Assembly (NCBI RefSeq): GCF_006345805.1
Contig: NW_021832590.1
Location: 186,001-250,000 of the forward strand
Length of the DNA stretch: 64,000 bases
Reading direction: 5' to 3'
Origin: Octopus sinensis
Taxonomy: Eukaryota
Numbering within the stretch: the first letter of the stretch is position 1; every line of letters starts with the position of its first letter. The notes below the pieces were generated by a model. It searched no databases. It saw nothing but the letters and a program-made list of their open reading frames with translations, and was not told the origin of the DNA. Position numbers and translations under genes: made by a program. This document shows positions 9,290 to 41,900 of the stretch, in pieces.

Positions 9290-10050
9290 CGTATTTTATG
9301 TCACCGGCTGGTTACCAAAGATGAACTTGAAGTAATCAAAAATATTCAAATAGATGTTTTTATATTGACCGATTTCAGAAATCTGAAAAAAAGATACAGA
9401 AAATTAGCAGAACAGTTAATTTTCGAGGAGGAAGAGATAGTATACATAAAATACAAAAACCAGAGGTTACGCTTTTTCCCAAAGAAGAAAAGGAACTTAA
9501 ACTAAAAACTATCGAGGTGATCGTTACATAATTATTATAGATTGAACATATGAGGACACATTTTGGAAGAGATAAGTTGCTTTCGATATTGAGAAAGGAA
9601 ATTTATGCAGTAACCCGAGACGAAATTACTGCTGTGATCTCAAAATGCGTTCACTGTCAGGTGCATATGTATTGAATTATTTTTAGTCAAAAAAGTTGAT
9701 GGCGACTAAGCCAACAATCACTCCTATTATTGCAAAAGGGCCTAAAGATCGCTATATTGCAGATTTAGTGGATTTAAAAAGGTATGCTAGCCTTAATAGC
9801 GATAATGGATGGGTATTTTTTTGTATAAATTGTAGTTGGTTGTGGTTATAGACTCATTTTCTAAATTTGCAGTTGTAAAACTTGCCAAGCGGAAATCAGC
9901 GGAGGAAATTAATAGAAGATTAAAGAATATTTTTTACATGATTGGTCATACATTTATTCTACAGACGGTTATTTTCTGTCCAATGGGAAAGATTTTAAGA
10001 ACAAATGTATGAAAACAATTGTAATGATTTGAAAATCATAGACATAAGTG
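9290..10050 (+). mobile_element. Decayed retroviral-like integrase (Ginger2/TDD-like) with spliceosomal micro-introns
   Basis: After removing GT-AG introns 9517-9540, 9661-9686 and 9813-9835 it reads IEHMRTHFGRDK...CVHCQ (HHCC zinc finger), KGPKDRYIADLVDL, WLVVVIDSFSKFAVV and NGKDF. There is a frameshift near 9475, and no RT, RNase H or LTR alongside. Confidence 0.72.
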
Positions 10051-10267
10051 GACTCTAAGATCTGAATGACGAATCATCCAAACATGTACACAAAAGTCGT
10101 ATAAAAAATATGACTCTTATAAAAAATTTTTATATAATAAAAATTCATGAATTTTTAATATTTGTTTTTAAATGGTAGACCTAAAAAATTGTATAATTAT
10201 AATTTTTTTTTTATCCTGAAATGTTTTTATTTCTTAAAAGAAAACAGAGAGTAATTATAATAAAATA

Positions 10268-11560
10268 CGTGCCGCCTTGAATGATATTGTCAAGCGCGCG
10301 CTCAACGCCGCTGGATTCCCTTCGGTCCTAGAGCCGGTTGGTTTAGACCAGGGGTTCTCAACCTTTTTAGCTCAAGGGCCAAATCGATAATTAAGATTAG
10401 CTTCGCGGGCCGCACAAAAAATATTTTTATATTTTCCAAGCCGGTAACTCGCTTGCAATCCGAAGTGCAGCCACTGCTGATGCGTAATGAGTTTTTTGGA
10501 CTCTTTTTTCTTTTTTTTTAATTTCCATTTCCTTTATAAAGAAATAAAAGTTAAAAAATCTACAAAAGGCGTTGTAACTAAAAAGAAAGTATTATTTGTT
10601 TATTAAGTTTTTGAAATCCGGAATAAGTAAAGTCGAAGAAGTTCGTAAAAGCTGACTCGAGTGATTATCCGTGAGTTTGTTACGATATTTATTTTTATTC
10701 GAATCATTTTACTAAATATTGATTCGCATAAATATGTAGATCCAAACATTGATGTAATATATGCATTGTGGTTATATTTTTGAATTTGTCTTGAGGAATT
10801 AATTCGTAAAAATTAATAATGGACGCATTTTTGAACAATGCCGCCAGTTCTATATCATGTTGTAAATTAATGAGTTCTAGTTGAAACTTTGCAGGCGCAT
10901 CCTTAATTTCCATGCTGAATAGAGTTGCGAATATTTTCATTAAAGGAAGGAATTCTTTAAAATTCTAAAAATTAAATTTATATAAATGTACCCCAAAACG
11001 TGCTTCAAATTGATTAATTAAATCACCAATTATGGATATGTTTAACCTTAAGAATAAACATTATTAAAAAATTAAAAAAGTTAGTTACTCTAGAGGGGCC
11101 GCAAAAAAAATCCTGGGGGCCACATGCGGCCCCGGGGGCCGCATTTGAGAACCGCTGGTTTAGACCGTGGCGACGGAAAACGTCCCGACGGGTCCACGCT
11201 ATTCCCGTTCAAGGGGGGACTCGCTCTCGTTTGGGACGTGACCTGTGTCGACTCGTTTTCCTCGTCATCTCTCATGGACTCTGCCTCCCGCCCTGGCTCA
11301 GCCTCCGCACATGCCGAAACAAAAAAAATAACAAAGTATGCCTCATTGGAGAACACCTGCCTTTTCGTCCCCCTGGCTTTCGAAACGAGCGGGATAATCG
11401 GCCCAAAAGCTCTTGAGTTCCTTTCGGAAATCGGCTTGATGATCTCAAGGAAGAGTCACGAGAGACGTGAGTCTAGTTGGCTTTTTCAGCGCATTTCGCT
11501 CGCGATATTGCGCGGAAACTGCCTATCTATTCGCGCATCCTCTCAATCAAAGAATTAACA
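10268..11560 (+). mobile_element. 3' end of a CRE-clade LINE (restriction-like endonuclease), split by a hAT insertion
   Basis: Removing 10349-11157 and one TSD restores [34 protein letters not shown]...VWDVTCVD...FVPLAFETSG...LFQRISLAILRGN. Confidence 0.85.
10349..11157 (-). mobile_element. Non-autonomous hAT (Buster/Charlie type) deletion derivative
   Basis: TIRs CAGGGGTTCTCAA and CAGCGGTTCTCAA. 8-bp TSD GTTTAGAC (10341-10348 and 11158-11165) fits nnnTAnnn. The transposase C-terminus (FQLELINLQHD) contains a 27-nt intron at 10965-10991. Confidence 0.92.
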
Positions 11561-12283
11561 TCATTAATTTACTTAATTAACAATTATTTTAGTTTAATAA
11601 AAAAAATGAAAAAAAAAATAAAAAAAATAAAATACGTTATTGATTCGGAAAAATTGGTGATGCCGGTTTTTGCCGACTCTTGGAAAAATTCATTTAATCA
11701 AAAAATTGATAAAAAATTGAATAAATCGACTTAATTCCATTATCAAGCTATTTTTAATTAATTTTTTTAGAAGAACAAATATAATTCCCAAAAGGTGAAA
11801 AAGTTAACACGAGTTTATAAAGAGCCTAGAGGTCAGCTCAAAAAAATCACATAGAGTTAATTCGGAGTAATTAATCAAGTCATTGTTTTAACTAGCGGAA
11901 TGGAACAAGGGTTTTAGAACTAAAAGTCATATAAAGGGGAGTTCTCAAAGAAAAATTGTCATCTCAAAAAGTGAAATGTATGTCCAAATGAGCGTCCTTT
12001 TATTGTAGACCTCACGAAGTCTTGTTAATAGCCGAAACGAGAATCCAAAAAAATAAATTTTGTGGTTTACTATTATTATTTACAACAAAATAAAATATTT
12101 TTTTCACTTTCTTCTAGTTGATCGTCACCATTTTTATCATTTTCTAAACTGGAAATTATGTCGAACGTCAACATTGAATTTGTAGTTTCTTTAAAATATT
12201 TTTAAACTTTTTAGGCTATTTTAGCAAATAAATCAAAAATTAATTAATTCCTTAAAAATCCATAATTATGAATTAAATGAAGT

Positions 12284-14925
12284 TCAAATTGGCAAGTTCT
12301 GGGGCTCTTCTGGTATTGGAGGTGTTTTCGTCGGAAAAGTAATGTTGGAATACTCTACCAATCGAACCTGTATTTCAATATCCGTCCACGCCTCTAAGTC
12401 CTGATTGTACTCGTCACTTTCCATCTATTTTAATCTATTTAGAATTAACTTTCTTTCCCATAAGTATTCTTATTCCATCGGTCCACAAATCGTGCTCTTT
12501 CTTACTTGGAGCAACAAAAGAAATTTCCCCTTCATCGTCGTCAACAATTAATGTTATATATAAGTGGAAATTTGGCGGAAACTAATTTTTTTATTATTTT
12601 TATACTTTTTTGAAGTCTTGTGGGAAGCATTCTTTTCCAATCATTAGATTTTTAATATTAGATATATAAGCTAAATTGTATATGTATAGAATACCTTTTT
12701 TTGAAAGTTGTTCATAAGACCAGTCGGTCAATACTTGTGCACTGTATACATAATGAAGAATTTTTTTATTCATGGATAACCGAATAAAAAGATTTTTTTC
12801 TAAACAAAAAATATATAATAATTAACCTTTTAATCTATTTTTCGCATTTCTTGTAAATTGGGCTCCCTTATGCATATGGGAGATTCGATTGTCCTCTATG
12901 ACTCTTGTTATTTTTGGAGCAATTATGGTCCTCAATTCTCTCAAACATTCAAAAACAAAAAACACTTGACTGGAAAGGCCGAGGTTTGTATCTCTGCCAA
13001 AGCCTGTTCTTCCGCATTCCAAATTTTTGCAATTTCTGAGTACGGAAATGCATTGAGTTTTCTTTTTATGGTTTCAAACGAGTTCACGTTTTGACAGGAT
13101 CTCGTCAGTTGTTCCTTAAAGACCCGCATGACCTTAAATTAAAAGACAAAAAAGACATTTTTTGACTCACTGCTGGTGGCTTTCATGTCTTTCCAGTTCC
13201 GTAAATACACGTGGAGGCAGACATTAAAGAGCGAATATATCGAAAACTCACTGAAGGCTATTGCCAAAAATGCCTCTTGTGAATTGTCTGATTTTTGATT
13301 TATTTACAACCAACCTCTTTTATCAAGATTGAGAAACTCAAAAATGACTACTACGATATCGACGACATAATTCGAGAATGACAAGTCGTCGGTTTTTGGT
13401 GAGTAGTCGTACAAATACTACTATTTTTGGGTTGGAGGAGTGCCTTGATTAGAGGAATTGGATGCATCCGCGCATATCTTGTGAGACACTCCAGTGCCAG
13501 TCCTCCATATGGGGCGTCTTTGAAAGTCACAATGTCAAAGTAATCGTCCTGCAATAAAAAGACTGACAAAACCAGGTTTATGTTGCTCAGATTTGTGGAG
13601 TTTTTAGAATACGACGAGTTTTCCAGAGAGTCTGAAACCACTTTTTTGATTTTCTCAAATTTCTCTTTTAAAGTCTAAAACAATTTTTCTTCATAAAACG
13701 TTTCCGTCGAGAGTAAGTTCTGCGAGTTCCAATTCTGATTCGAAATAGAACTTTTGAAGAAAAACCAGTACGTCCGCGGTCTCGCTGGATATGTTGAGGT
13801 TATCGGTGATCACGACCTGTCATTCCTCACGCAACAGAGAACAAACCAAACTTCGAATCAAGTTTTCTTTGGACAAATCAACGATCGTCTAAACTCAATT
13901 TACAATCACACTTTTCGGTCTTCTTGATTTGACTTTATCAGCAAATTCTTGACAAATGTAATGATCAGAGTCAGAATGTGTTCTAAACCTGAAAAGGCAT
14001 TATTTTTATCTGCAAGTCCCAGTTTCAGACATCTATAACTGACTATGAAAATAATACTTTTGGGCTACCGAAAACGCGTCTTGAATAAAATCCGAGCAGT
14101 TCACCTCCATAATTCGAGCAGGACTAAATATAGCAATGTTCTTACTAATTAGTAAAGACCGTCAAGATCTCGACGCTGTATTTCATCAGCGACAAATTGG
14201 TCAGACAGGTCCTTGATTTTAAAGTCCCGGCGATCTATAGTTCAGGAGAAGAGTTGGTCACTTTGGTTATAATATTTTTATTTATTTTTTCGCATAATTT
14301 AAAGTCCACTTCGAGTACGTCTGAGATGATTCGAAGACAGATTCTATACTCTTCTTGAACACTGCCATTATTTAAAGAAATTACACATTTCTAGGCTTTT
14401 CAGGACGTTAAGGATTTCAGCAAATCCTCCGACTTTAAGGAAATATTTGACAGACTCGGCGTTCTCAAGGTAAGCCGAAATGTTTTCGAGTGCTGCAAGT
14501 TTTATATTTTTGTCGTTTTTTTTGAGGGTTTCAAGGTTTTGGCTGATTTGTTCTTCCTTGGAATAAGAAATAAAAGGACCATCGGAATCTCAAAGTGGAT
14601 GATATCTCCGTTTTGGACCATTTCTCTGTTCTACTCATATTTATATTTGAATTTATCGGGAATTAGCAAATTGACCTACTTTTTCGGTTATGAGAGTTTT
14701 GGTCTTTCCCATGAGAAAAAATTCGTAGGATTTGTAATTTTCAATGGACCAACTACACAGTTTAAACAAAAATGACAACTTTCGAGAGACGTCTCGTTTT
14801 AGTTCATTGATCTGCTGATTCTAAATCAGAAGTAAATGCTAATTATGTACGTCATTAATTCCAAGGAAAAGTGTGTTCCTGTTTTGGCATACAATAGCCA
14901 CTTTTGTGATTCCATCTTGGCTCAT
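12284..14925 (-). CDS. ELMO: Engulfment and cell motility protein (ELMO/CED-12), many micro-introns
   Basis: N-terminus MSQDGITKVAIV...CSWSIENYKSY...LITEK|NREMVQNG. Middle region: DAPYGGLALECL, NWKDMKATS, VMRVFKEQLTRS. PH/C-terminal region: ISFVAPSKKEHDLWTDGIRILMGKK|MESD...EIQVRLVEYSNI...PPIPEEP. Internal exon boundaries were not all traced. Confidence 0.88.
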
Positions 14926-15479
14926 TTTAGGTAATCCTTTAAAGAGATTATCTATTTATTTCATGTTAAATTTTTTTTATTTTATACTTTTTATTAAATT
15001 TTGTATTCAAATTATTTTTTTAGATATGGTAAACCTACAGAAAATTTTGAGAACTTTTTATTATATATGACCTACGCTGGCAACTAAGATGACCTACAAA
15101 CTTTACGGGGTGAACCGAATTCACCTTAATATGTCCATTTTATCAATTTGACAAACGATAATTACTAGCATTTAAAAAAACTTAACATTTTTAACTTTAT
15201 TCATAGTAATATTTTAGTTTCTTTTAAGAATTTGATTTAAATGTTATTAAAGACAACTAAAAATTAATCTTTTTTACTTTTCCTTTTTCCTCATATGGGA
15301 ATTCAATTAGTTCCTTGATAATTTAATTCAAGCCTAAATTTTAATATTTAATTATATTTCTTTTCCTATTTCCAAATCATATTCTGACTTCTGTATTCCC
15401 ATTTTTCATTCATTTAAAACAAAAATTCATATTTATTAATTTCTAAAAACAAATATATCGTATATTTATTAAGTTAATC

Positions 15480-17216
15480 CAGTGATTCTCAAGTGCGGCC
15501 CCTGGGGCCGCATGCGGCCCCTAGGATTTAATTTGCGGCCCCTAGGTTTTATAAATGTTTTATTTTTTAATTTAATATTTTTAAATTTTATGAATAAAAA
15601 AATGTCACGTTTTTTATTTGTTGTTGTGATGTCTGATTCTAAACGTTGTCGAAAACTTTCCGAGGAAAATAGGATTTTTCAACACATCTGGGAAGAAAAA
15701 TATTTCATTATTGAGATCAATGGAAAGGCTCTTTGCCTAATATGCCATTCTATTATTGCAACTCTAAAAACGTATACAATCGAACGGCACTACCGTTTCC
15801 ACTCTATTCTTTATGACAAATTCACTGGTGTTTCTCGGACGAAAATTCTTTTGCGCTTGATTGTTCCAAAGATATTTCAGATATCGAACAATTAGTAGTG
15901 TTTATAAGGGGAGTAACATCTGACTTTCGAGTATACGAAGAATTTTTTTCATTGAATTCACTTCACGGAGAAACTAAAGGAACACAGATTTTTTCTCCAA
16001 TTGTGAAATTAATTGAAGATTATCAACTGGATCCAAAAAAATTAGTTTCAATTTCAACTGATGGAGCCCCTTATATGATTGGCAGTAAAACTGGTTTTCG
16101 TGGACGTATGAATAAATGGAGGTGTGATAATAACTGGACTCCAGTATTATGGCATCATTGCATTATTCATCAGGAAAACCTAATTTCCAAAAATATTAAA
16201 ATGGAAAATGTTTCTGAAGTAGTGATAAAAATTATCAATTGGATTCGGGCGAACGCCTTGAATCACCGAAAATTAAAACATTTTTAACTGAAACCGATTC
16301 GGATTATGGCGATGTCCTTCTTTTCTCAGTAGTAAGATGGTTAAGCCGTAGCTCTTGTCTCAAAAGGTTAATTTCTTTTATATTTAGATTTTATCAACTT
16401 CTCCCTGAAATTATTTTATTCACTGAAAATAAAGTGGACAATGCATTATTGAAAGACAATAGATGGGTAGCAGATTTAGCATTTTATGTGGATCTATCGG
16501 TGCATCTGTCTGCCCTAAATGTCGAACTACAAGGGGAAAATAAGCTAAATTATCAAATTTATGGATATATAAATGCCTTCGTTAAGAAATTAATTTTATG
16601 GAAAGCGCAGATATCAAATAATGATTACACACATTTTCCTTATTTGTCAGAAAATTCCGAAAGTGGCTCAACTGATAAATATTTAAAAATAATTGAAGAT
16701 TTAAATTTGCAATTTGATGCAAGATTTCAGGTTTTTAGTATTTAATTTAAGCTGACAGAGCTTTAAAGAAGGTGCAAATTCAATGAGATTATTTGCATCT
16801 CCATTAATTATGAAAAGTGAGGAGGTTTCCGGGATTTACCAACTGGAATTGATTGATTTGCAAAATGATGTTGAACTGAAAAGTTTGTTCAACAACATTT
16901 CAATAATTGACTTTTATTCGAGAATTCCAGAGAACCGATTTCCGAATTTAGTCAATAATGCAAAGAAAAATTTAGCAATGTTTGGATCAACATATGTCTG
17001 CGAATCGACATTTAGTAAACTCGTTCGAATTAAAACAAAGTTTCGCAGCAGATTGACTGATACTCATCTGAGTGATTTGTTACGTACTTCAACAAGTAGA
17101 ATTAAACCTAATTTTGATTATTTGGTTAATAAATAATTCTTAAAAATTATTTGCGGCCCCTGTAAATTTTTTTTTTTAATTTGCGGCCCCTGAGCAAAAA
17201 AGCTTGAGAATCACTG
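15480..17216 (+). mobile_element. hAT (Buster/SPIN, GTF2IRD2-like) DNA transposon; internally deleted, one frameshift, two micro-introns
   Basis: Perfect 14-bp TIR CAGTGATTCTCAAG. 8-bp TSD AGTTAATC (15472-15479 and 17217-17224). Motifs ALCLICH, STDGAPYMIG, HCIIHQENL, VRWLSR and FGSTYVCESTFS. Introns at 16367-16387 and 16731-16758. Confidence 0.95.
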
Positions 17217-17329
17217 AGTTAATCTTAAAGAAACGATGCCTCATTATTTTCATTTAAATTATAAGTAAGATAAACCTGGTATTTCATGAATCACGTGTTA
17301 ATCCCAAAAATACGTCTTTATTTGTTCTA

Positions 17330-17990
17330 ACATCAATATGATCAGTCTGGAATCTTTTATTTGGATTTCTTGCTGTTACGTGGTGATTCGAATTGGATAC
17401 CTAAATTCACATCAAAGAAACGTAAATTAATTAAAGTGAAGAAGTATCTTATCCAGAAAATATTGGTTCCAGCTTCCTACTGTTCCCCTCCAATCCGCTT
17501 TCCTCTGCCAGACTCATGGACCGGGATAAAGCGTCCGTGTCCTCGACAGGTTCTATTGATGTCTTATGATGGCTACTTTCTCCATTCAGTCGTTCATTGC
17601 TTGCCCCAACATTCATTGAAATACTTGTTACGTGATTCGTCGCTGAGACTTTGTATACCGGACGCATTCTTTAATCTCGATCGTCTGAACATAAGCAAGA
17701 GTTGAATCCTCGACTTTTAGAGAGTTTTGGTAATGCTTGTAATATTTAGATACTATTGTATCCCATGTGAGAACCAGTGGTACGACGTTCACATTTGGAT
17801 TGTGAATTAACTTCAATTCGCTTGTGAAGAGATCGTATTTATCTAATTTCTCGACTTCTACATGCTTAAAAAATTGTTGAAAAACAATCCCAACTTCGAT
17901 GAGCGTAATGATGTCCAAATGGTCTCTCAAAGTAAATGAAGATAAAACAGAATTAACCACTATTGAACAAATGCCCACCCGCGTGGATTA
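17330..17990 (-). mobile_element. Degenerate non-LTR retrotransposon 3' fragment with restriction-like endonuclease (R2/NeSL-like)
   Basis: DIITLIEVGI...VEVEKLDKYDLFTSEL...VVPLVLTWDTIVSKY in ORF 17628-17978. Confidence 0.6.
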
Positions 17991-18660
17991 AAAGTGAAGG
18001 AACACCAGTAAACTCGGATTTTTATTTGGCGACTCAAAAAGATATTACACGACTGAAGATCTTAGCCACAATAGCATTCAAACAATTAAAATCGATTTTA
18101 TTGTTAAAATAACAAATTCCTGCGAAGATGCAGCTGCGTTTGTCCAACCAGTCCACATGTACAACGCAGGCACTTGGGGAACGTCAAAAAAGACATGAAA
18201 CAACTCGACTCTTTTTATAAAGACCAACTAAAAATTTTTTTGGTTATTCTTGACAAAAGACAATTCCGAACAAAAAATTATACAGGCTGACTGAATGTGT
18301 ACCTATGAGTCTGGATGTTATTGATGCTCGTTGGTGCCTCTTTAATCATATTTTACAGATTAATGAAGAAACACTTTGCAATGCAACCATGGAAGAATTT
18401 TTCTGCCATAATGAATATCCAACTTATAGAGGACGTCGAAGGAGATGTCTTCCAAGACACTTGCGGATGATTATGGTGTCATCGGGGGTCAATTGAAGGA
18501 CGCTGATGATCTGGACAAAATCAGAAGACGAGAAAGACAAAAAAACGGATGGAAAAGACTAACAACAAGAATAGTTAAAAACATGGCACATGCAAAACAT
18601 AAACACTGTTTATTAGTAACGCAAACATGCATTAACTAACTAAATAACTAAATCAATGCC
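17990..18660 (+). mobile_element. Degenerate RTE-clade LINE 3' fragment
   Basis: VQPVHMYNAGTWG, ARWCLFNHILQ, YRGRRRR and LKDADDLD match the RTE C-terminus at 37915-38451. Confidence 0.7.
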
Positions 18661-18904: not shown

Positions 18905-19779
18905 CCTCTGTCTGTATTCCAACTTCAGCTATTTTCGTAACTCTTGGAACGTTCCACCCTGCCCATGGCTTCAAGGCTGAATTTTTTATGTCTCCTTGGT
19001 ATTTTTTGGCATTCTTCGAAGCTTCATTTAACAGTTTCTGCATCAATATTTTCCCATTTTCAGTTTTGAAGTTTCTTTAGAAAAATCCTGGCATCGATTG
19101 CACTGAACTTCGGGTTTTCTGTACCACTCGGCCTTTACATCGAAAACCCGATCTTTAGCCCCAATCGTACAAGCAACTGAGCTTCTCCATGATCAGAAGT
19201 TACTATTATAAAGATAGACAGTCTCACTCACTTTCTCTCACAGCGTTTGAGAGTGATTTTTTCGACATAAAGACGTTCACCTACACGAGAAATTGAACTA
19301 AAATTTTTCTCCAAAATGGTGACCGGTGATGGTGAATCTTTGTTTCTTCACTGGTCAAATCGGGCTTTGTTTCTTTCTGTGTCTAATTGTGGGCAATCCT
19401 CATGCATTTTGTTGCGGAAAAGTTAACAATTCTAAAAGACTTTTCTCTCTCTTGCATATTGAGTCGGAGTAGATTTTCTGAGTACTTCACGTTAAGTGAA
19501 ATTGTCAGGAGAACCCTGGATTTAACAGGCTTTTGCTCTTCTTTTACATTATAAATTCTTCAATATAAAAATGAATATTTAGCATTTGAATTTATAGGGT
19601 TTCTCGATCTATTTCGAATTTGTCACAACCAAAATCAGATTTGTTGCAATCAAATCAGATTTATCAATATAAAAATGAATATTTAGCATTTGAATTTATA
19701 TCTTTTGATAATAGACCATATCGCTTACTGTTTAATAAATCATTATCAAATAATGCAATAAAACTGTCCAAATTGTTGG
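18905..19779 (-). repeat. 875-bp direct repeat, copy 1 (possible decayed gag/zinc-knuckle/protease)
   Basis: Aligns without net indels to 22144-23018 (offset 3239). The minus strand shows a broken C..H..C knuckle-like motif and a D-S-x-S-P-V-T-I-L protease-like motif; the product call is weak. Confidence 0.85.
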
Positions 19780-20419: not shown

Positions 20420-22143
20420 TCAGAAGAAGAATATGGTTTATTTAATACAATAGGTCCAAAAGAAAAGTGGCCGAGGAATTAGAGCTTAGGGGGCTTGATA
20501 ACGAAAGCCACGAAGGTCTCAACTTCGGTTTTGCCCCAGGAGACTGTCTTATCTCCCTCAGCGAGTTCGAGTTTTTGCCAGGATCGCGTCAATCGTGTCA
20601 ACACTCCGCTCATGCAGGTCTTCCAGCGGACTGCTAAGCTCCAGGCCGAATGCCAGTTTGATGGCAAATCGTCTGGTTTTTTCGAGTTTGGCGATTAGAA
20701 GGTCCCTTTCATCAGTTTGGTACCAGCCCTCCGAGCCATAGATTATTAGTGGCTGAACACAAGTCTGGTAGATGTGTAGAAACGTTTCTGCGCTTATACA
20801 AAAACGCCTCAGTCCTTTTAGGATTTTCGTTCCTTGTTTCCGCTTTGCATGCACATGGGGTTTGTATGACCCGGTGGGGTCTATAGTTACTCCCAGGTAA
20901 CGTAGGTTCTTCGATATAATCAGGTTCCATAATTCTCGAAAGTCGGTTTTTTGTCACGACCCATTGAAATCCAACAAATGGTACTTTTGTCCAGAGCGAG
21001 ATTCAAGCCTTTACCATTGCACCAGATTTCAAGTTCCTCCAAGTACGGTTCTAGTCTGCTCCAGGACAGCCTTCTTCTGTGTCGGGGTCCCCACATCGAG
21101 ACATCCGTAACCAAGATATCGTCCGCGTAGATAATTAGTCTGCTCGTAGGAAAATGTGGTTTCGGGACGTCGGCCAGAAATATATTAAGAGCAAGGGGCT
21201 GAGAACCGATCCCCGAGGAACACCTCTCCTCAGATTCACGGCCTTCGATAGCAAATTTCCACAACGAATGAACGATTTTCTCTCGCACAAGAAGTCCTTA
21301 AGCCATCTGACAGTTTTTCGCCCAGCACCCAACTCCGCTACTTTATCTAACAACCCCAAGTGCCAGACACTGTCAAAGGCCTTGCAGACGTCCAGGCAGA
21401 CCGCCGTTAGGCAGGCTTTATGTTGTTTGGCCCGAGTCAGTTCTTCCTCAAGAAGCGAGAAACAGTGACCGGTTGATCGACCAGGTCTAAAACCCCACTG
21501 TTCCTCCGCGAGTATATTATTTTGTTCCACGTAAGCCGATAAACGATTGAAAATAATTCTTTCCATTATCCTCGACGTTGTGCAGATAAGGCTAATTGGC
21601 CTATAACTTCCTGCCTGCGTATTTGGTTTTCCAGGTTTTGGGATCATTCGGACGATTGTTCGTTTCCAGCTAGGTGGGACGTGACCATTGTCCCAACTGG
21701 CATTGAATAGTTTTACCAGAATACAAAGCAAGCATCCGGGTGCCTTCTTGAACACCTCCATAGGGATGAAGTCAAATCCAGGAGCGTTGTTCTTGCAACC
21801 TCTGATTGCTTCGAACGTCTCATCCGTGGTTATTTCTCTGCACAAGGGTCCATCCAAAACAAGCTCTGTCCAGTGTCACCAGGCAAGTATTTCTTGGGCA
21901 TCCGCGGAAACAACGGCCGTCAGTTACGAAATATTCTTCCATAGCAGTTTTTCCCGATACCTCCAGATCCATTTTTAGGATGTGTCTGAAAGGCCTTCAA
22001 TTGCATTCAGTAATTTCGGCTTGCTTGATGTTCTTGCATGAACTGTTTTACTGCTGTGCCTCGAATGTCAATTGGAGACTAGAGTACGCCGAAGTTGGTC
22101 TCTATGGAAGGAATCTAGATTCAAATTATCCGTTTCAGAAAGA
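20420..22143 (-). mobile_element. 5'-truncated I/Jockey-like LINE (RT domain, frameshifted)
   Basis: APGFDFIP, IPKPGKP, YRPISL, EQWGFRPGRST, LDVCKAFDSVWH, GVPRGSVLSPLL, IYADD. Confidence 0.88.
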
Positions 22144-23018
22144 CCTCTGACTGTATTCCAACTTCAGCTGTTTTCGTAACTCTTGGAACGTTCCATCCTG
22201 CCCATGGCTTCAAGGCTGAATTTTTTATGTCTGCTTGGTATTTTTTAGCATGTTTCGAAGCTTTATTTCACAGTTTTTGCATCAATATTTCCCCATTTTC
22301 AGTTTTGAAGCTTCTTTAGAAAAACCCTGGCATCGATTGCACTGAACCTCGGGTTTTCTGTACCACTCGGCCTTTACATCGAAAACCCGATCTTTAGCCC
22401 CAATTGTACAAGCAACTGAGCTTCTCCATGATCAGAAGTTACCATTATAAAGATAGACAGTCTCATTCACTTTCTCTCACAGCGTTTGAGAGTGATTTTT
22501 TCGACATAAAGACGTTCACCTACACGAGAAATTGAACTAAAATTTTTCTCCAAAATGGTGACCGGGAAGGTATAATCTTTGTTTCTTCACTGGTCAAATC
22601 GGGCTTTGCCTCTTTCTGTGTCTAATTTTGGGCAATCTTCATGGATTTTGTTGCGGAAAAGTTAACAATTCTAAAAGACTTTTCTCTCTCTTGCATATTG
22701 AGTCGGAGTAGATTTTCTGAGTACTTCACGTTAAGTGAAATTGTCAGGAGAACCCTGGATTTAACAGGCTTTTGCTCTTCTTTTACATTATAAATTCTTC
22801 AATATAAAAATGAATATTTAGCATTTGAATTTATAGGGTTTCTCGATCTATTTCGAATTTGTCACAACCAAAATCAGATTTGTTGCAATCAAATCAGATT
22901 TATCAATATAAAAATGAATATTTAGCATTTGAATTTATATCTTTTGATAATAGACCATATCGCTTACTGTTTAATAAATCATTATCAAATAATGCAATAA
23001 AACTGTCCAAATTGTTGG
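22144..23018 (-). repeat. 875-bp direct repeat, copy 2
   Basis: Partner of 18905-19779. Confidence 0.85.
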
Positions 23019-30640: not shown

Positions 30641-30649
30641 AAATAAAAT

Positions 30650-31590
30650 TTTAAAACAATTACTTTTTATTCTGAACTTTTAAAGCAAATCAAACCATCA
30701 ATTAGCTTAAAATAGCAATCTACTTCAAATTCATGAAAATTTTAACATGCTATTCTCAGTTCAAGTTCCTTTTTGAAGTCTGTCGCAGACACTTCAAGAT
30801 ACCTTCCTGACTTAATTTGTGTCATTATCACAAAAAGTCTTTGTTCTTCCCTGGCCAAAACATTGACAAAAGCTGCCAAATTTGGGTGTGCTCTGTTTAA
30901 AGAACTGTTCAACAGCTAATGCCAACCTTTTAATGAATTAGTTGTCCTGGGCATTGACTTTAATACCTGATGAAAACAACTCCAAAAACAAGATGGGTCA
31001 GCAATAAAATTTTTTTTTAAATAAATCAAAAAATTCATTATTTTTTGGTTGTTTTCTTTTCCTGTAGCATCAAGAGAAAATTTTCAAATTCCAATAAAAC
31101 ATTTTCCACAGGGATGAAAGCTAAATGGTAGCACTGACGTCATAAGATGGGTCAGCAATAAAAATTTTTTTTAAATAAATCAAAAAATTCATTATTTTTT
31201 TGTTGTTTTCTTTTCCTGTCGCATCAAGAGAAAATTTTTCAAATTCCAATAAAACATTTTCCACAGGGATGAAAGCTAAATAATAGCATTTCCTCAATAA
31301 TTTTTGTTCCCACGATGAAACGTCTTTGTAGGCTCACACAAGACCAAGACATTGTATTTTTCGTCATATGATTTGCCCGAAATGGAAATTACAGCCAATT
31401 ACATTAGACGACGAAAAAATTAGACGGCATCTTTCTGGTCAGATGCTTTTTATCTCATGATCCTCAAACGGGCCATGATTATGAGCATTTTTTGTACTCA
31501 ACTTGTTTTGAGCATCCACCGTGCACCTCGCCATGCATTCTCGACTTTTGCACCTCCAATAGGTAAGACCGTCTTTTTTTCTATCTGTAT
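30650..31590 (-). mobile_element. Mutator (MULE) transposase relic, internally deleted, with an internal 137-bp tandem duplication
   Basis: YWRCKSRECMARC...HNH zinc finger, GCNFHFGQIIW, LAFIPVENV and CPRTTNSLKGWH. Duplicate copies at 30990-31126 and 31144-31281. Confidence 0.75.
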
Positions 31591-32880: not shown

Positions 32881-33649
32881 AATAATTATTAATTACCATA
32901 AAAAATTATTACTCATTGCGGAAAGGTTTTAGCGAGGCTTTTTTGCATAGAATACAACAAATAAAAGATTATCTCAATTCTGATCGCGTTCCTTCATCTT
33001 TTAAAGATGTTGATTAGAAAAAAGATATAGATTTGAAAAATTTCTTTTTATATGTTCATAAGTCAGAAATACCGTCAGGACATAGCCAAAAATCGAAATG
33101 ATTGGATTGGAAGATCAAAAAGAAATTATTAATGCGCTTAAAATTGCTTATGATAACATTTTTTGTGGCGGGGAACAAAATGATCAAAAGACGAAAATGG
33201 AAATACGACAAAGATTGCTAATTGCGCTCAGATTGTGTGATTATAAGAACTACCTAAGATGCATGTCGACCAAAGCTGCCTCTATATCAGAAGTTTCCAA
33301 GCTTTTCTTTACACGTCTCCTTAGAAAAATGTACAATCTTGCGCCTCCCTTTTTATTCCGTAATATAATACAATTATTAATTTTACAATTTATTAATAAG
33401 TTAAAATCCAAATCAAGATATAAATTAATTAAACTTCTAGTCGCTCTATCATCTATTTGCAAAGTGATTCAGATAGGCAAGCCCTCCTTTTTCCCTTCGA
33501 GGTACTGACAGGCAGGGGCGATGTTAAAGACATACTAATTTGGTGATAAATCTCGTTTATTCGCTTGTCAAGTTCAAACGTTCTTTTCCATGGTTCAACC
33601 CTGTTTCTAAAAGAAACAATCATGCTCTCAAGAGTCTCAATTATTAATT

Positions 33650-34260
33650 TATCAAAAACAATTTTTTTAAACAAAAAGTTAGTAAGATAATTTTTTTCTA
33701 TCTTTTCGCAAAGTTTTTGAAATCTTTGTGTCATTGAAGAGATTGCTACTCTTAGCTCATTAGTCACTACTAAACGAGTTCGATATTTAGATTTCATTGC
33801 AGCTAGTGCAGAAAATCCAGCTTCACATAAATATGAGATAGAAAATGGCAATAAAACTTTCATTGCTTTATTCGACAAAATTTCATATTCCGTACTTACA
33901 TTCGATGCTAGTAAAGCATTTGAAGAGACAGAAACAAGTTTTTTTAACGATTTCGTTTGGTTATCAAACTCTTTTAATTTTCTTTTAAAAAATTATTCGG
34001 ACTTATGGACATATTTAGAATGTATCGTTTCAAAATGTCTTCTTAATTTGCATGGCCTCATACTATCTGCTGCAAGTGTTTTGAGGCAAAGCAAGCAGAG
34101 GAGTTTTTCCAAGGAATCAACAATGATACGTGTGAATCCTAACAATAAGTAACATGGACAGTATTTTCTTGTCTTTGGAGTGGTATTGATTGTATTCCAA
34201 TCATTTTGACTATTTAACCTTTGTCAATTTTAACAGCCTGGTTTCTGACATTTGAATATT
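33650..34260 (-). mobile_element. hAT Buster (ZBED5/SCAND3-like) internally deleted relic
   Basis: LCLLCLKTLAADSMRPCKLRRHFETIH is joined to EYEILSNKAMKVLLPFSISYLCEAGFSAL..MKSKYRTRL. Confidence 0.8.
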
Positions 34261-34479
34261 TCTGAGTATAAGGGTTTCGACAGAAATATTTTCGAATACA
34301 ATCAAATTAAGGAAACGTTAATCGGAATATTCTTAGAAGATATAAATATTCAGCGTCGACGCCGGTTGGCTGAAAAAGTTTTTCATTTTGGGCAAAAAAT
34401 AATAGTCATTAATCTTTCTTAATCTAAAGACTTTATTTGAGAGGGAAAATTGAAAAACTAATTTCTTTGGACTGTTAGG

Positions 34480-34800
34480 CAGAGATGCCCGTTCTTTACA
34501 TTTAATGTTTCATGGAGACATCAACAAAATTGAATTATCGTTAAAAGTGATTTATAAAAAAAACATTTCAGAGTGCGATGTATGTAAGTTTTCTCTTCCA
34601 CTTAAACCGTGGATGAAACTAATCATGTTTTCGCTTCTGCTCAGAATGATCGGTTTCAAATTGACCTTATTGAGCTGAAAAGGTTTGAAAACGTTAACGG
34701 AAGATAAAAATGGATTCTATCCATGATTGGCGTCTATAGCCGTTTTTATGAATATAATTATCTTAGTTTTGATTTTGCTAGGCCACAAATAAATAATTTA
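34480..34800 (+). mobile_element. Second decayed Ginger/KRBA2-like integrase fragment
   Basis: H-GDINK...ISECDVCK...ASAQNDRFQIDLIEL...KWILSMI, frameshifted. Confidence 0.55.
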
Positions 34801-35051
34801 GGCGTCGAGGTTTCAAAAAATTTTGATTCCCCTTTTAAATCCGTGCTTCGGAAAACATCGGAGACTTCAACCAGGAGAACAAATATGGATTTTCTATGCG
34901 TTCCAAAGGAAAGAAACCTATTTGCGAAATATTCTGAATTTTAAGATAATGGAGGATAGTGTAAAAATTTTGAAAATGTTTAATTATTTTAATTGAAAAT
35001 AATATGACTAAAACCACTCAAAATTCAATAAAAATAATGGTCTAATTATTA

Positions 35052-36440
35052 ATGGGTCAAATTTCATCAGTCACAATTCTTTTATTATTCATTTTGACTA
35101 AAGGAATAGCTGAATTATCGCCTGTGTTTCTCAGTTTGACCATATTGTCCTTAAAATTTAAAGTTCCTGGAGATGGAGGCTCAAAGTTGTACGCAAAATT
35201 TAATAAATCGAGTCATAACAAACTCTGCTTTCAAAGAAGTGATCATTATTTTCTAGTTTGGGCACCATTACGAATTTTCATGCCAGTTATAAAACGATGC
35301 TATTTCTACATTTCCAGGTGAGTTCACTTTTTTTAAACAAAAGACTCCGGTGGTCAGATTCCAAAAAAACACCGATGAACCAAACCGGCGTGGTTGTAAA
35401 GACCGGTGAATTTGGAGACCCTAGTTCAGTCGAGTATCTCGGGGGCGCCCACGTGCGTATACTATTTTCGTTTTAACTTTCACAGTAAAGAATACAACTG
35501 GAAATTTTGCTCAGCTCATTTCCTTTTTAACTTCCACCAAGTCCAGTTTGTCTTACAAAAGAAAATTAAATCTTATGGGGATTCCTTACGACTTTCGAGT
35601 CGGAATAAGTAACTGGTAATTTTAACCAGCAGATAATCTCGAAAATACGTTTATTCAGTTTAAAAATCAAATAGAAACCACATATCAGAGATCTAATAAC
35701 GTATCTGTTACCCTTTTGGCTCACAGCTATGGATGCATAATTACTGCACGATTTTTAACAATGCAAACTCGCGAGTGGCGAGAAAAGTATATTCGGAGAT
35801 TTATCAGCATTTCTGGCCCATACAACGGCTCCACTGAAAGTATCCGGGGATTTTTAATCGGTATCACTTGTTGAGTTAACGATTGATAGGAGTTTCTTGG
35901 GACTTTCATTTTCCATGTGATTATGCACTTCGAGATGCTCTCCGAACATTCCCAAGCACATATGAACTTTTTCCTGATTCAGACAGTGTTGTCCAAGTAG
36001 GGGGCAAGACCTACTCATTAGACGATTATGAAATTCTTATACAAGTATTATCGACTTGCTGAATGGCCAGAAACTAAAAAATGTGGACAAATCTGCAATG
36101 CTCGATATGCTAAATATATATAAAAATGTTACTTCAAATACAAAAGTGCCTCGAGACGTAGAAATTCACTGCATTTATAGCAAAGGAATACCAACAGTCA
36201 ATCGACTTGTGTATATAGCTCAGTAATTTTTTTAGGTATTCATCCTGGAAGACCTATCCCAATTTTCCTTCTATAAAGTATACCGATGGAGATGGGGTTG
36301 TCAGATTGGCTAGTCTACAAGAATGTAAAAAAAGACACCCTTGGGCCACAAATTACGAGATTGGAATAATGAATCATATGAGTGTATTGAACAGTCAATC
36401 AACTTTCGATTACATCAAAAAAGTCCTACTAATACCATAA
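35052..36440 (+). CDS. PLA2G15: Group XV phospholipase A2 / LCAT-family lipase with a signal peptide; several micro-introns
   Basis: VPGDGGSKLYAK, GIPYDFR, LLAHSYG (nucleophile Ser), DGDGVV (Asp) and NHMSVL (His), after a hydrophobic N-terminus. Confidence 0.87.
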
Positions 36441-37289
36441 TCTAAAACTGTATTACTAACAATTCTCTAAATTGACTCACACCTCTAAAACCAACAACTA
36501 TAAAAATGAGAAATAATGATTAAGAGTAGTATAATATCATAAACTGTAAATATAAGCCAAGTTTTATTATTTGATTATTTCTAATGATTTCGCTAAAATT
36601 CTTATGCTTGATTGTTTTGTAACTGAACACTTAGACCGGAATCCAGGAAACTGGCACAGAACCTATAAAAAGAACGATCATGAAGGATTTCCAGCTTTGT
36701 TTTACCGGTGAAAGTTAAAGTCCCTCTCATTTGGAAACGAACTCAAAATTAAACGCAGTGAAAGCAATTATCTGCTCCATTAATGTTGAAGAATGGGCGT
36801 TACAATCCGCAAAGCTATTTACTCAATGTTAGGGTGTGTCTCTAGTGGTGGTTAGAAAGTCATACTAGGGGGTTTCAATTTCGAGATACAATCTATTTGT
36901 CCGAATATAGAAAGTTTGAATATTCCTTTAAAAGGCAACTATCATTTGCTAATTTGAATGAGTTTAACAAAACGAGTGCTTTCTCCTCAAGTGAGTGTGA
37001 TGCAGAACTGTTTTCTTGCTGCACCGTTTCAAATGGGTACGAAAAATTGATACATAAATTACTGATTTTTAAATTTTTATAAAGAAAACTAAATATTTTT
37101 TAGTTACTCCGCTGGCGAAGCCCGCATAAGGGCATTTTAAGGCGAATCAGTTGAGTTTTTTAAGTTTAATATAGAAAAAATATGCGTATTTGTCTCAAAT
37201 ATGCGTCATTGCCTCTCGATTCGCAGCGCATCGTCGTCGGACTGACCCTCAAGTCTGAGACACTTTTAAATTTATCTTGCTATTAATTC

Positions 37290-37760
37290 CAGACCAGCAT
37301 GAACAGGCCCATTTAGATCATTTAGTGATCTAAGCATTCTCTTAACCCAATTTTGACAATCTTCTTTTTTGTAGCTTGCTCTTTGTTTCTCCCAATATTT
37401 GTGAAATGGTACCAATAATATGAATGTTCTTCCCTTTACTTGTAGGATATTTTAAAATGCAGCGCGACCCTTTTGGGGCACGACCTTAGGTTCACATATG
37501 TTTCATCAATGTAAATTATGTGCTTTGCTTGACCAATTTTTTCATTTAATTTTTCAACATAAACACGACGTTTATGTTTATTGTTTTCGGAATTTGCAGC
37601 CACGGTTTCTGGAATTATTTTTTTAATCGTAAATAGTTGTTCATTCAAATGACGATGTACTGTAGTGGTTGATATCTTCATATTTGTTTGACGAAAAAAT
37701 TTATTCACAATTTCGTTTAAAGTTATTGAAGGGTTTTCTTTGACTATAAAAACATCTTCC
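37290..37760 (-). mobile_element. IS630-Tc1-mariner transposase relic
   Basis: NPSITL...ISTTTVHRHL..QLFTIKK...IIYIDETYVNL. Confidence 0.7.
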
Positions 37761-38927
37761 CACAGTTTACAGAAAGTTGAAATTGAAAAAATGAGAAAAT
37801 ATGACCCTTTATCTAATAAGTTGGAATTAATTTATCATGTAAGAGTGAAAATGCAGTCTTTGGTTACGGACGAAAGTTTATTTGTGATCATAATATGATA
37901 TGATGAATACGCTTTTATAATGATGATGAGTTTTCCGTCGTTTTGCAGAGGACTATTAGTAGTGCATCAAGATCGTCCCCGTCCTTCAGTTCTTTACCAG
38001 CCCTCTTTAGGTCTCTATCCAGCGTACCCGGGAGAATATTTCTTGGTCGCCCACGGAAACGATGACCCCCAGCTTCGAAATAGTCCTCCATAGCGGCGTT
38101 TGCCGGTGCATCCAAATCCATTTTTAGAATATGTCCAAACAGCCTCCATCTGCATTCGGTAATTTCGAGCGAGATTGGTTTGCTTGATGTTCTGGCATAA
38201 ACTGTTCTGCTACTCAACCTTGAATGCCACTTGGAGGCTAGAGTACGTCGGAGGTGATCTCTATGGAAAGAGTTTAGGTTGTCATTGTCTGTAGCGGAAA
38301 GTCCCCAAGTTCCGGCGTTATATAGGAGTATTGGCTTCACTAGTGAATTGTATAGTCGTATCCGTGTTTTTGTGCTGAGTCCTTTGCTTTTTAGGCAATT
38401 TTCCTTTAAGCTGCGTAGTGCACTGTTTGCATGTGTTTTCCGCATAATCACGTCTTTGTTCGTCTCACAATAGAGATCCGAGTTTCTTTACTTTTCTCCA
38501 ATGTTCGTCCAGCTTAGACTTCTGTCTTGCTAGCTCAGTAAATTCTGTTTTCTCCACATTTACATTGAGGAACCACTCAGCAAGTCTATTTGGCATCACC
38601 TCCAATAGGCTTTCCAGAGCGTCCTTGACTGAAGAAATAAAATCCACGTCATCCGCGTATGCCACCACATTGATCTTTCCTTCATAATATGGTTTTAGTT
38701 CTCTCAATGCAGCTTCCAGATATATGACAAACAGTATAGGAGATAACGGATCCCCTTGAGGTGTTCCAGATGTTGTTTTAAATGGTTTAGAGCACTTGTC
38801 TCGTACCCTGACCGATAGATAGGTTTCTGATAAAAGTGCCCTGATCATCCGAATAGAAGATTCATCAAGGAATCCTGCAAGGACTTGCATTAATTTTTGA
38901 CGATTAATCGAGTCAAAAGCTCTTGAC

Positions 38928-41900
38928 TAGGGCCAACATTTTTTTAACCTTAAAAATTGAAAAATTTAACCTTAAAAAGTTAACTTTTTAACCTATAAAC
39001 CAAAATTTTTAACCTTAAAATTAAAAAAATTTAACTTTATTTATTCTCAGGTTAAACCTGTAAAGTATAAATAAGAAACAATAAAATACTTTAAAGACTA
39101 TTCATGACATAATTTTCCAAATTTTGTGTAGCAAAGTTTCTGTTTGACCTCATAAAACTCCTAAATTGCGAAAAGCATCGTTCGATAGATGCCGAGGATG
39201 GTTGACAGTTTTGAAGTAACGAATAATCTTCCGGAGAGATATTTTTATTATCCATATTAATAATTTTAGTCATATCGCTCTCTAAAAATCTCTTCTCTAA
39301 ATTTTTTGATCCCTGCTTCATCCTTCCCGAAGTCAAGTGTACATAACGTCGAATATGCAAATTCTATTGTACATTCGTTACTTTCAAGTTGTAATATTTT
39401 CTCTATGAGATTAATTACTATATGAAAAACCTAGAATATGTGAATAGTTATGCGAAATTGCACATAAGCTTTTGACTAGTTTTTCACTTATCAATGCATT
39501 TTTGGTGGCAGTCACTAGTATTCCTTCGTCCTCAATCAAATCAAAAATGTTAATCACTGAGATTAAATTTCTTGAATAAAAAGATGCAGCCTTTAACCAG
39601 GTGCCCCATCTCGTCAACACAACTTTCGAGGAATTCCAATTTCGTAAAACAACAATTTTCGCTTGTGGTTCTTCCTGACAGAAGCTTGCACGCTAGCTAT
39701 CACATCATCAACTTCTGGATAAGATTTTCTGACCTCCATTGAACAATTATGCAAAATATGGGTGACGCAATTAACATTAAAAAGATTAGAATATAAATTT
39801 TTTAAAATTTTCCCGGCTAAATCATTAATTAATTAAAACAATACCGGATGTCATATACCGTGCAGCATCAAAAATGAGAAGCATAAAATTATCCCGTTCA
39901 ACCATAAGGTTTCGAATGGAATCATCAACGATCTGTGCTATGATATTTTTTGTTGGCGCGGATTCGATTGGCTTGAATGAGACCAAATAAGTAATTGTAG
40001 GGAGTTTTATTGATCCCATCAAAACGGCGACATAACGTTTGTTTCGAATTTGAGTTTCATCGGTTATTGTAAAAATTTTTTGTTCTCTAGAAAATAAACT
40101 TTGATGGAATACTTGAATTTGTCGATCCTATGTACAGTCCGACCTCTAAATGGGGCACTAAGTGCCTCAAATCAGAGGTTTCCCCAAAAAAGAGGTTTTT
40201 CAAAAAGTTCAATAAATAAAGAAAAAGAACATTATTTTTTAAAATAATCAGTTAATTTTTCTCCATATTTATATTTATTTTTAATTCCTAACGACACTTT
40301 CTTTCTGAATTCATAAAAATCATGAAGAGAATCTGGAATCAAATCAAAGATGTTTGTCTCTAAGTTTTCCATCAAACTTAAAATTTGTGATATTGATGGT
40401 TCGCAGCTTATATTCTTATAGATATTTGGATCATTATCTTCTATTTCATTAAAACATTCATCAATAACATTATTAAATATTTCTTCAGATGATTCATTTA
40501 TGCAACTCGAGTCTGATGGAGATTGTCGAAAAACCTTTTGCCAGCAGTTATAAATAATATCCGCAGATACATTATTCCAAGCATCTGAGATTATTGTTAC
40601 CACTTGCCGCAAATTTAATTTGGATAAAGACTCTATAAACAAATCCTGGTCGTCTTGAAAACATAAAAAATCAATTAGACAATTCAAATAATTATCCTTG
40701 AAATTTTTAATGATTCCAGCATCCAAAATGGTTGAAGTATTGGTGTCGTATTTTTTGGTAAAAATAAAAAATCAACGTTGCTAAATGTCGATATTTTGTG
40801 GCAAGCAGCGTTATCTGATAACATTAAGATTTTTATTTTTTGAATAATCATTTTTTCATTAATTTTTTTGAGCCAGGATATAAAAATGTCTCTTGTCATC
40901 CACGCATTTTTGGACGAAGAGCATAAAATTCGATAAAAAGAGAAGTTTCGTTACAATTAAAAATGTTCTCCTTTCCATATTGTTCAACTTTGATATTTAA
41001 TTTTGATAAAAAATTCAGAATTATCGCATGATCAGCAGATGCGGATTCGCCTGACAATGTTCGGAATTTTAATTCATGCCTCTGCTTGAATTTTTCTAAC
41101 CATCCATTTGAGGCTTTAAACTTGTTTAAGCCCATTCTCGAAGAAACAGTTTAGGGAAATTTTTTTTAAAAGAGTTCCAGAAACTGGAACATTCTGATCC
41201 CTTAGACGCTGAAAAATATCAAGGACTTTTCATCAAATCCGTTTTTATTTTCACTTAATGATGAGGAAAGAAATCCTTTTTTGATAAATGGAATAATATT
41301 CTTTTTATACGAAAAATAGTTACCTTGCTAGTATTGTACATTATGGATAATCTCCTCTCAGAATGTTCTTTCTTTAAAAGATGATCAGCAATCTTCAACT
41401 TGGTTTCATATTCAAAGGCATTACACAAGAAATTTGAAATGAAACGTGTCTTAAAATATTTATTTTTTAAATTGGTATAATTAATTTTATTTAATAAAAA
41501 ATCAATGCCCCAAATAGAGATGTTAAAATTAATTGATTTTTTATAATTTGGTTAAAAAATTTATAATGCCCCAAAACAGAGTTTTCCCCAAAAAAGAGGT
41601 GCCCCACCCCTGGAGGTGCGCCCCAATTAGAGGTCGGACTGTATTCATTTGCAATATATTTTGCACAATTCCTTGCTTGTGATTGCGAAGGAAGGGAAAT
41701 TTTGTTGCTTTCGAAGAGATCAACAAATAAAGGCATTGATAATTTATTTAGCGGAATGTCACATTTCAGAAAAGCCTTAGTCACCCTCAAATTCCAGTTT
41801 CCAATTTCAGATTCATCTAATTTTTGTTGGCTAAATGTAGTCAAACGATCTATATATTATCGAAAAATCTATACCAACGAAAGTCTTATGTTTCTTTGAT

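Follow-up and report, generated by a model that had tools for sequence, protein, structure and literature searches.

How do transposase genes come to carry introns of fewer than 30 nucleotides (nt), and to whose genome do they belong? This question is raised by a 64,000-nt stretch filed as Octopus sinensis DNA (NCBI RefSeq assembly GCF_006345805.1, contig NW_021832590.1, positions 186,001 to 250,000 of the forward strand), which we call the window and number from its first letter. Three families of mobile elements are concerned: a Buster-type hAT transposon, a second hAT transposon with TAGGG termini (hAT2), and an element known from its integrase gene. In each of them the gene is interrupted by very short segments that begin with GT and end with AG. 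We conclude that these segments are very probably genuine U2-type (GT-AG) spliceosomal micro-introns, lying in the transposase and integrase genes of DNA-propagated elements in the genome of a dicyemid, a parasite of the octopus kidney.

Ultrashort introns in three transposon families

A first-pass annotation, made from the letters alone, had listed seven such segments in four elements. Their coordinates and lengths (24, 26, 23, 21, 28, 27 and 28 nt) hold, 7/7 have GT at the start and AG at the end when read on the coding strand, and after their removal the products are collinear with intronless relatives. Seven further segments are likewise bounded by GT and AG on the coding strand. Related copies come from two contigs of assembly GCA_006345805.1, VCDQ01013161 (39.6 kb; L001 below) and VCDQ01000492 (1.29 Mb; L002/L008, below L002). 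The intron-bearing elements of the window are listed here, with terminal inverted repeats abbreviated as TIRs and target-site duplications as TSDs.

15480-17216 (+), Buster hAT copy, non-autonomous, with TIRs (CAGTGATTCTCAAG...) and a perfect TSD (AGTTAATC)
15472-15479 and 17217-17224, the 8-bp TSD AGTTAATC of this copy
16367-16387 (+), Buster intron A of 21 nt in phase 2, in-frame and stopless
16731-16758 (+), Buster intron B of 28 nt in phase 0, lying upstream of the hAT dimerisation domain
10349-11157 (-), Buster deletion derivative, resembling a miniature inverted-repeat transposable element (MITE), with TIRs and TSD GTTTAGAC
10341-10348 and 11158-11165, the 8-bp TSD GTTTAGAC of the derivative
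10965-10991 (-), Buster intron B in the derivative, 27 nt
38928-42299 (-), hAT2, with TAGGG... termini and an 8-bp TSD (CTCTTGAC); tblastn with proteins P0246 and P0250
38920-38927 and 42300-42307, the hAT2 TSD CTCTTGAC
41850-41874 (-), hAT2 micro-intron a, 25 nt, phase 1, newly found here
39817-39844 (-), hAT2 micro-intron b, 28 nt, phase 1
39403-39430 (-), hAT2 micro-intron c, 28 nt, phase 1, newly found here
40133-41643 (-), decayed pogo/Tigger-type element nested in hAT2, with 24-nt TIRs and Pfam DDE_1
4728-5202 (+), 3' end of a second hAT2 copy, 5'-truncated, 76% identity, stopping short of the intron sites
9290-9967 (+), retroviral-type integrase gene, degenerate 5' part, which covers an H2C2 zinc finger and the first part of the rve core
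9517-9540 (+), integrase micro-intron 1, in phase 0 and 24 nt long, containing in-frame stops; its sequence is the same in the L001 copy
9661-9686 (+), integrase micro-intron 2, 26 nt, none in the L002 paralogue or in outside relatives
9813-9835 (+), integrase micro-intron 3, 23 nt, with a 27-nt GT-AG segment at the same site in L002

In the Buster copy, the product left after removal of introns A and B is gapless at both junctions when aligned with eight Buster transposases (alignment A1). At intron A the joined residues RWLSRSSCLKR/FYQLLPEI (a slash marks the junction here and below) line up with RWLSRASCLKRFYELLPEI. Intron B shifts the frame, and the hAT dimerisation domain is in frame only after its removal. 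The copy itself is damaged, with an internal deletion of amino acids (aa) ~80-178 of the ~600-aa transposase and a 1-nt frameshift in an A-run near 16270.

The positions of both introns are conserved in other copies. The deletion derivative has only ~67% DNA identity to the Buster copy of the window, and its 27-nt segment lies at the exact site of 16731-16758 (alignment A2); a 93% identical copy of the derivative (L002:11714-12426) has the identical intron at 11862-11888. A third subfamily, on the minus strand of L001, has a 27-nt intron (L001:2643-2669) at the intron B site and a 25-nt intron (L001:3013-3037) at the site and in the phase of intron A. Intron B is therefore found at one site in three subfamilies with ~65-68% DNA identity, at lengths of 28, 27 and 27 nt and with differing interiors, and intron A at the same site and phase in two (21 and 25 nt). 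The L001 gene has a third intron of 30 nt (L001:3584-3613; QLIK/TSKDF) in the region that is deleted from the window copy. Unspliced, this gene has an open reading frame (ORF) of 365 aa, and without its three introns it has an intact ATG-to-stop ORF of 587 aa. Aligned with the intronless protein P0001, the 587-aa product shows 53% identity across 584 residues and only one gap, of one residue; it keeps the D..D..E-region motifs AxDxSKD, TDG and CExxFSKM. Introns below 30 nt are thus compatible with a functional-looking transposase gene. A single ORF without interruption encodes P0001 (metagenome), and the same is true of P0004 (the tunicate Clavelina).

These elements belong to the Buster clade of the hAT superfamily, having 8-bp TSDs, TIRs, a C-terminal dimerisation domain and a FAM200/ZBED5/GTF2IRD2-like core. 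The TSDs of three Buster copies are AGTTAATC, GTTTAGAC and GTCTATA(T/C), the last with 7/8 matching, and the TIRs are short. The window product matches Pfam PF05699, and its best homologues carry PF14291, PF27073, PF27046 and PF05699.

The deletion derivative sits within another repeat, whose 144-aa ORF (11124-11558) has no Pfam match. The whole segment 10204-11617 is a nested insertion in the window: L001 (8997-9007) passes straight from the equivalent of 10203 to 11618.

The hAT2 element tells a similar story. Removal of intron b gives LLIFDAARYMTS/AGKILKNLY, which contains DAARYMTS/AGKIL and is collinear with six homologues (alignment A4), removal of intron c gives NYSHILEKILQLESNECTIEF, collinear with P0250, and removal of intron a links the N-terminal zinc-finger exon to the next exon. 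The closest relative, P0246, has 49% identity and a single ORF of 1380 nt. By its TSD, termini and transposase core, hAT2 is a hAT element of the DUF659 type; its DUF659 match scores 32.5 bits, under the Pfam cutoff of 34.7, and 627 representatives match at E<=1e-10. Two lesions break the copy, the nested pogo insertion and a 1-nt frameshift near 39620.

The integrase gene matches Pfam zf-H2C2 and Integrase_H2C2, and its relatives P0121-P0124 have rve. In the window copy a T-run near 9474-9478 contains a 1-nt frameshift, and beyond ~9967 the gene is either truncated or decayed. A partial copy with 98% identity (L001:8183-8556) has one T more at 9474-9478, which restores the frame (alignment A3). 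Intron 2 is a clean 26-nt gap in L002 and in the metagenome relatives L003, L004 and L005 (alignment A5), and L002 reads HCPFCQSKRM unbroken across the site. This intron is therefore polymorphic, being present in the window and L001 copies and missing from L002. Removal of intron 3 gives GW/LVVVIDSFSKF as in P0121 and P0122. L002 has an additional 26-nt intron after QGQVER, the removal of which gives FNQSIKRWLS as in P0121. The gene has few relatives in a large database. Neither a reverse transcriptase (RT), a long terminal repeat (LTR) nor a TIR was found beside the copies in the window, L001 or L002. Because multiple constitutive introns have been kept across diverged copies, the integrase probably propagates as DNA as well. 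One protein in the NCBI set, P0125, is a Buster-integrase chimera.

Could the intron-bearing genes be domesticated host genes with an ordinary host structure? Buster and Gypsy/Ginger-type integrases have often been domesticated in animals, for example as GTF2IRD2, ZBED5, GIN1 and KRBA2 (PMC3424704), and our search for integrase termini found none. However, Buster and hAT2 have TIRs, 8-bp TSDs, diverged as well as near-identical copies and internal-deletion derivatives, and the integrase is multi-copy and mostly degenerate. We regard domestication as very unlikely.

The boundaries of the segments are far from random. Among the homology-defined insertions of 21-30 nt in the three families, 14/14 are bounded by GT and AG, a property of 0.3% of random 21-30-nt segments of the window, or of 2.6% when a 4-nt slide of the boundaries is allowed. 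The 14 introns are 72-89% AT, compared with 67-68% in the adjoining exons, and their sequences are mutually different beyond this AT-richness. Homology is needed as the test, because the joining of ORFs by GT-AG segments is not above background. In a scan of dinucleotide pairs 18-35 nt apart, with joined ORFs of at least 60 codons, GT-AG pairs joined ORFs at a rate of 6.96 per 1000 pairs and control dinucleotide pairs at 3.4-6.6. With control pairs scoring nearly equal and a false positive at 33982-34002, homology-free ORF joining was discarded as a test for introns.

The opposite view is that these are mutational debris, random short insertions or filler in dead copies with GT and AG at their ends by accident. 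The window copies are all pseudogenes, GT-AG segments that join ORFs are frequent by chance, and a related element has at least one short insertion other than an intron. This view is nonetheless extremely improbable and is already effectively refuted: GT..AG boundaries are seen in 14/14 cases when at most 2.6% are expected, the same sites are used in subfamilies that are ~33% diverged and whose intron interiors have diverged, and the 587-aa ORF is intact only after removal of the segments.

Other lesions in the intron-bearing copies are 1-nt frameshifts, several of them in homopolymers. Judging by the frameshifts at 9474-9478 (T-run) and ~16270 (A-run), some of the apparent pseudogenisation may be long-read homopolymer error.

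The genome behind the window and its own introns

The window is AT-rich eukaryotic DNA with a GC content of 27-44%. Decayed mobile elements occupy approximately its first 43 kb, and compact host genes lie downstream. The following host features are needed for the comparison with the transposable element (TE) introns.

45052-45912 (-), CapZB gene (F-actin capping protein beta), 71% identity to B9ZYV2 and 100% to P0127
45412-45438 (-), CapZB host intron, GTAATC...TATAG, 27 nt, an interruption relative to B9ZYV2
45277-45306 (-), CapZB host intron, GTTATT...TACAG, 30 nt, an interruption relative to B9ZYV2
6590-7420 (-), NK-type homeobox gene, protein read from the window
6987-7011 (-), intron of the NK-type homeobox gene, 25 nt, between ORFs of 124 and 139 codons
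12425-12449, 12582-12605, 12800-12826, 13133-13156, 13675-13699 and 14362-14386 (-), GT-AG candidates between 12400 and 14400

The window is dicyemid DNA filed in an octopus assembly (GCA_006345805.1) and deposited under the Octopus sinensis name: its CapZB protein is 71% identical over its full length to B9ZYV2 of Dicyema japonicum, compared with ~45-50% for other animals. The NCBI protein with that label, P0127, has 100% identity to the CapZB exon of the window, and its 310-kb contig carries the exons seen in the window. The genome of D. japonicum has ultrashort introns on record, with a mean of 38 bp (PMC6736024), and it is the sole animal besides myxobolids in which such introns are known (PMC13644364).

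At least two further contigs appear to come from dicyemid DNA too. L001 is probably from the same organism as the window, because the two share repeats that are 93-98% identical. L002/L008 is taken as dicyemid because its clathrin heavy-chain gene is compact, very divergent and split into closely spaced ORFs. An octopus origin of L002, which would have implied the sharing of transposons between host and parasite, had been suspected from an NCBI clathrin model spanning more than 6 kb; it was dropped when the coding part proved compact and highly divergent. The RefSeq-annotated octopus reference contains at least ~1.6 Mb of dicyemid DNA whose proteins are labelled octopus. Our literature search found no paper on dicyemid contamination of the O. 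sinensis assembly.

The first-pass description of the segments as host-sized is borne out. The TE introns have a median length of 26.5 nt (range 21-30), and the ~26 AT-rich GT-AG host candidates of the window, a set that is partly ORF-based, have a median of 25 nt (range 23-32). The two groups are also similar in the composition of their ends, with a weak GT[A/T]...[T/C]AG. Reduced splice signals have been described for the introns of D. japonicum (PMC13644364).

A second intron of the NK-type homeobox gene is probable at 6596-6620. The run of AT-rich GT-AG candidates of 24-27 nt that lies between transposons at 12400-14400 (-) suggests an unannotated multi-exon host gene.

Host genes also bear on another explanation, that the segments are removed from the DNA itself by programmed elimination. 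Dicyemids reportedly eliminate DNA in their somatic cells. The internal eliminated sequences (IESs) of ciliates are similar in minimal size (PMC3464196). The boundaries here are GT..AG and not TA..TA repeats, with no flanking TA repeats, and like segments in host genes are missing from the cDNA-derived D. japonicum protein, which makes excision at the DNA level scarcely credible. The segments are not ciliate-type IESs. Nor are they Introner elements, as they are without TIRs or TSDs.

The claim that annotation misreads the micro-introns also holds up. The NCBI models P0127 (CapZB) and P0123 (integrase) and the 365-aa Buster model in L001 all run into introns. P0127 enters the first CapZB intron and ends there ('...EANVITFYV'), and P0123 translates the 27-nt intron 3 of L002 as 'VFISSIKSQ'. 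Standard annotation truncates or fuses intron-bearing transposon genes in this way.

Gain or shrinkage of the introns

Micro-introns are not a general property of the DNA transposons in this genome. The earlier claim that such elements carry them stands for Buster, hAT2 and the integrase, and it fails for hAT3, a second Buster family and a Tc1 element, which were checked for micro-introns with none found. The window contains one of these negative controls.

33283-34227 (-), hAT3 deletion derivative, negative control, with a full copy in L002 that is free of micro-introns

The GT-AG candidate at 33982-34002 in this element was rejected as an intron: it contains a point-mutated stop, and a sister copy reads through. 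In the hAT3 transposase at L002:3483-3545 (-), the gene is interrupted by an insertion of 25 nt without GT-AG ends. This insertion resembles a duplication, repeating 22 nt (GAAAGTACAATAATAGAAGATC) from 38 nt upstream, and it illustrates the raw material for short insertions.

The expectation that retrotransposons would be free of introns agrees with a screen of the RT ORFs of the window, a weak one limited to the coding strand, in which no AT-rich GT-AG candidate appeared.

The first-pass annotation had left open whether the resident transposons shrank or gained their introns. Gain within the dicyemid lineage, after the transposons had settled there, is the more likely course and the one that we favour. 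The reasons are threefold. For each of the three families, the closest outside relatives have the gene in a single ORF, uninterrupted at all sites (P0001, P0004, P0246 and L003-L005); hAT3 and the second Buster family of the same genome, like its Tc1 element, are intronless, the first two at the homologous sites; and integrase intron 2 differs between subfamilies. Some of the introns would predate the split of the subfamilies, and at least one would have changed state later.

Shrinkage would mean that ancestral introns of normal size arrived with the transposon families and were then compacted alongside the host introns. Ogino et al. 2010 reportedly describe the host introns of dicyemids as compacted forms of ancestral introns whose positions are conserved. 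Such shrinkage in place is the view taken of dicyemid host introns (PMC6736024), introns are common in DNA transposases of other organisms (PMC4158355) and our outgroup sample is small. Set against the uninterrupted relatives, the intronless families and the inconstancy of intron 2, these points leave shrinkage less supported than gain, and we consider it unlikely. As to the mechanism of gain, an origin by tandem duplication of AGGT was rejected, as the downstream exons do not start with GT and the signature is missing.

How would gained introns persist? The elements copy as DNA, in the case of hAT by cut-and-paste, as the TIRs and 8-bp TSDs show. Since they move as DNA, any intron would pass to each daughter copy, deletion derivatives and dead copies included, and the host spliceosome would have to excise the introns for a full-length enzyme to be made.

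A broader proposal can be put forward only tentatively, with slightly less than even confidence. Resident dicyemid DNA transposons may have repeatedly gained ultrashort introns de novo, with at least one gain or loss after the subfamily split. Their multi-copy families might then document, with dates and replication, how introns are born in an animal that is otherwise conservative in the positions of its host introns. The elements could also be locked to spliceosomes that accept introns below 30 nt, a barrier to transfer, e.g. into the octopus.

Several observations pull in the other direction and should temper these conclusions. Splicing in vivo is here a prediction from the DNA. All four window elements are defective, so the introns of the window are relics. 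Three introns are in frame and stopless (Buster intron A of the window with 21 nt, one of 30 nt in L001 and one of 27 nt in L002), and taken alone these could pass as coding insertions. Integrase intron 1 is the weakest case, a net length difference of ~25 nt relative to L005 being the only support for its site, and intron a of hAT2 is of moderate strength, lying in a weakly conserved stretch. Beside the integrase copies no RT, LTR or TIR was found, and a Ginger-like DNA transposon is one candidate for this element. The origin of L001 rests on the shared repeats of 93-98% identity, and that of L002/L008 is better supported by its clathrin gene. Finally, gain is read from a thin and unrooted outgroup that includes metagenome contigs, and for integrase intron 2 it is just as parsimonious to assume a loss in the L002 lineage.

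Transposase genes with introns are already known, and what we describe is an ultrashort animal variant. As with the Drosophila P element, maize Ac, medaka Tol2 and the CACTA elements of plants, the hAT elements move by cut-and-paste, the transposase mRNA would be spliced by the host and the introns travel with the DNA. Unlike those of the known elements, the dicyemid introns are 21-30 nt long, below the usual minimum for animals. Within CACTA families the intron/exon structure evolves, dominated by loss (PMC4158355), whereas the nearest relatives of the dicyemid elements are intronless, which points to gain. For the P element regulated splicing is known, in contrast to the dicyemid elements, which are known from sequence alone.

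A precedent comes from Paramecium. There the Tc1/mariner elements Sardine, Thon and Anchois have predicted introns in their ORFs, in a host whose introns are ~25 nt long (PMC3464196). They differ in belonging to a ciliate and to another superfamily, and their introns are predicted only; the paper contains neither a comparison of positions across subfamilies nor an ORF that is intact only after splicing. The host micro-introns of D. japonicum are alike in size class, weak GT...AG signals and AT-richness (PMC6736024, PMC13644364). They differ from the TE introns, the sites of which are intron-free in relatives.

The Buster elements share an 8-bp TSD, TIRs, an N-terminal zinc finger, a FAM200/ZBED5 RNase-H-like core and the dimerisation domain with AeBuster1 and the domesticated GTF2IRD2 and ZBED5. 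The Buster relatives that we examined are single-exon, unlike the dicyemid family with its three introns. Introners also tie transposable elements to intron gain (PMC9860276, PMC12130899), but the relation is reversed: the dicyemid introns lie inside TE genes and are too short to be elements themselves. No report of introns in dicyemid transposons was found in the literature.

The origin of new spliceosomal introns is a long-open question, and among animals there are few clean cases of recent gain. In this small genome, introns missing from the nearest relatives are found in several TE families, at positions that can be compared across dozens of dated paralogues, and intron 2 is polymorphic between subfamilies. 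The timing of gain, and possibly its mechanism, can in this way be tested from the genome assembly alone. We see the added value of the dicyemid TE introns in this, as a system for the study of intron gain.

Proposed splicing control and transfer barrier, and other features of the window

Two consequences had been suggested for these introns, a control of transposition by splicing and a barrier to horizontal transfer. Both are reasonable conjectures, the former by analogy with the P element; the latter would offer a simple, testable reason why such elements might not survive in ordinary hosts.

Control by splicing would make the introns a regulatory device, with regulated retention, for example in soma versus germ line, limiting the transposase as IVS3 of the P element does. 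The argument for this is one of logic only, namely that introns A and B must go before the C-terminal dimerisation domain can be reached. Very short introns are inefficiently spliced in some organisms (PMC13644364, citing microsporidia work), and retention of the three stopless in-frame introns would yield variant proteins. Yet host genes constitutively carry the same kind of intron, and the TE introns are indistinguishable from these. A dedicated regulatory role seems quite unlikely to us, and ordinary host-type micro-introns remain our preferred account.

Some minor features of the window are given here for completeness. Rfam and tRNA scans of the whole window gave zero matches, and an exact-product look-up of the window ORFs, made in search of further copies, found no entry on record. 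Two direct repeats of 876 bp, 97% identical (18905-19779 and 22144-23018), lie around an RT ORF of the long interspersed nuclear element (LINE) type at 21135-21857 (-). Either an LTR-like (or pseudo-LTR) arrangement or a segmental duplication could account for them. Two tandem units of ~145 bp, 96% identical, occupy 30990-31288. A dispersed repeat of ~135 bp, 79% identical between 44712-44847 and 56761-56892, lies near host genes and may be a MITE. At 58001-60000 there is a strong positive GC skew of 0.29 at the gene of an RRM protein with an arginine/glycine-rich tail (ORF 57816-58268).

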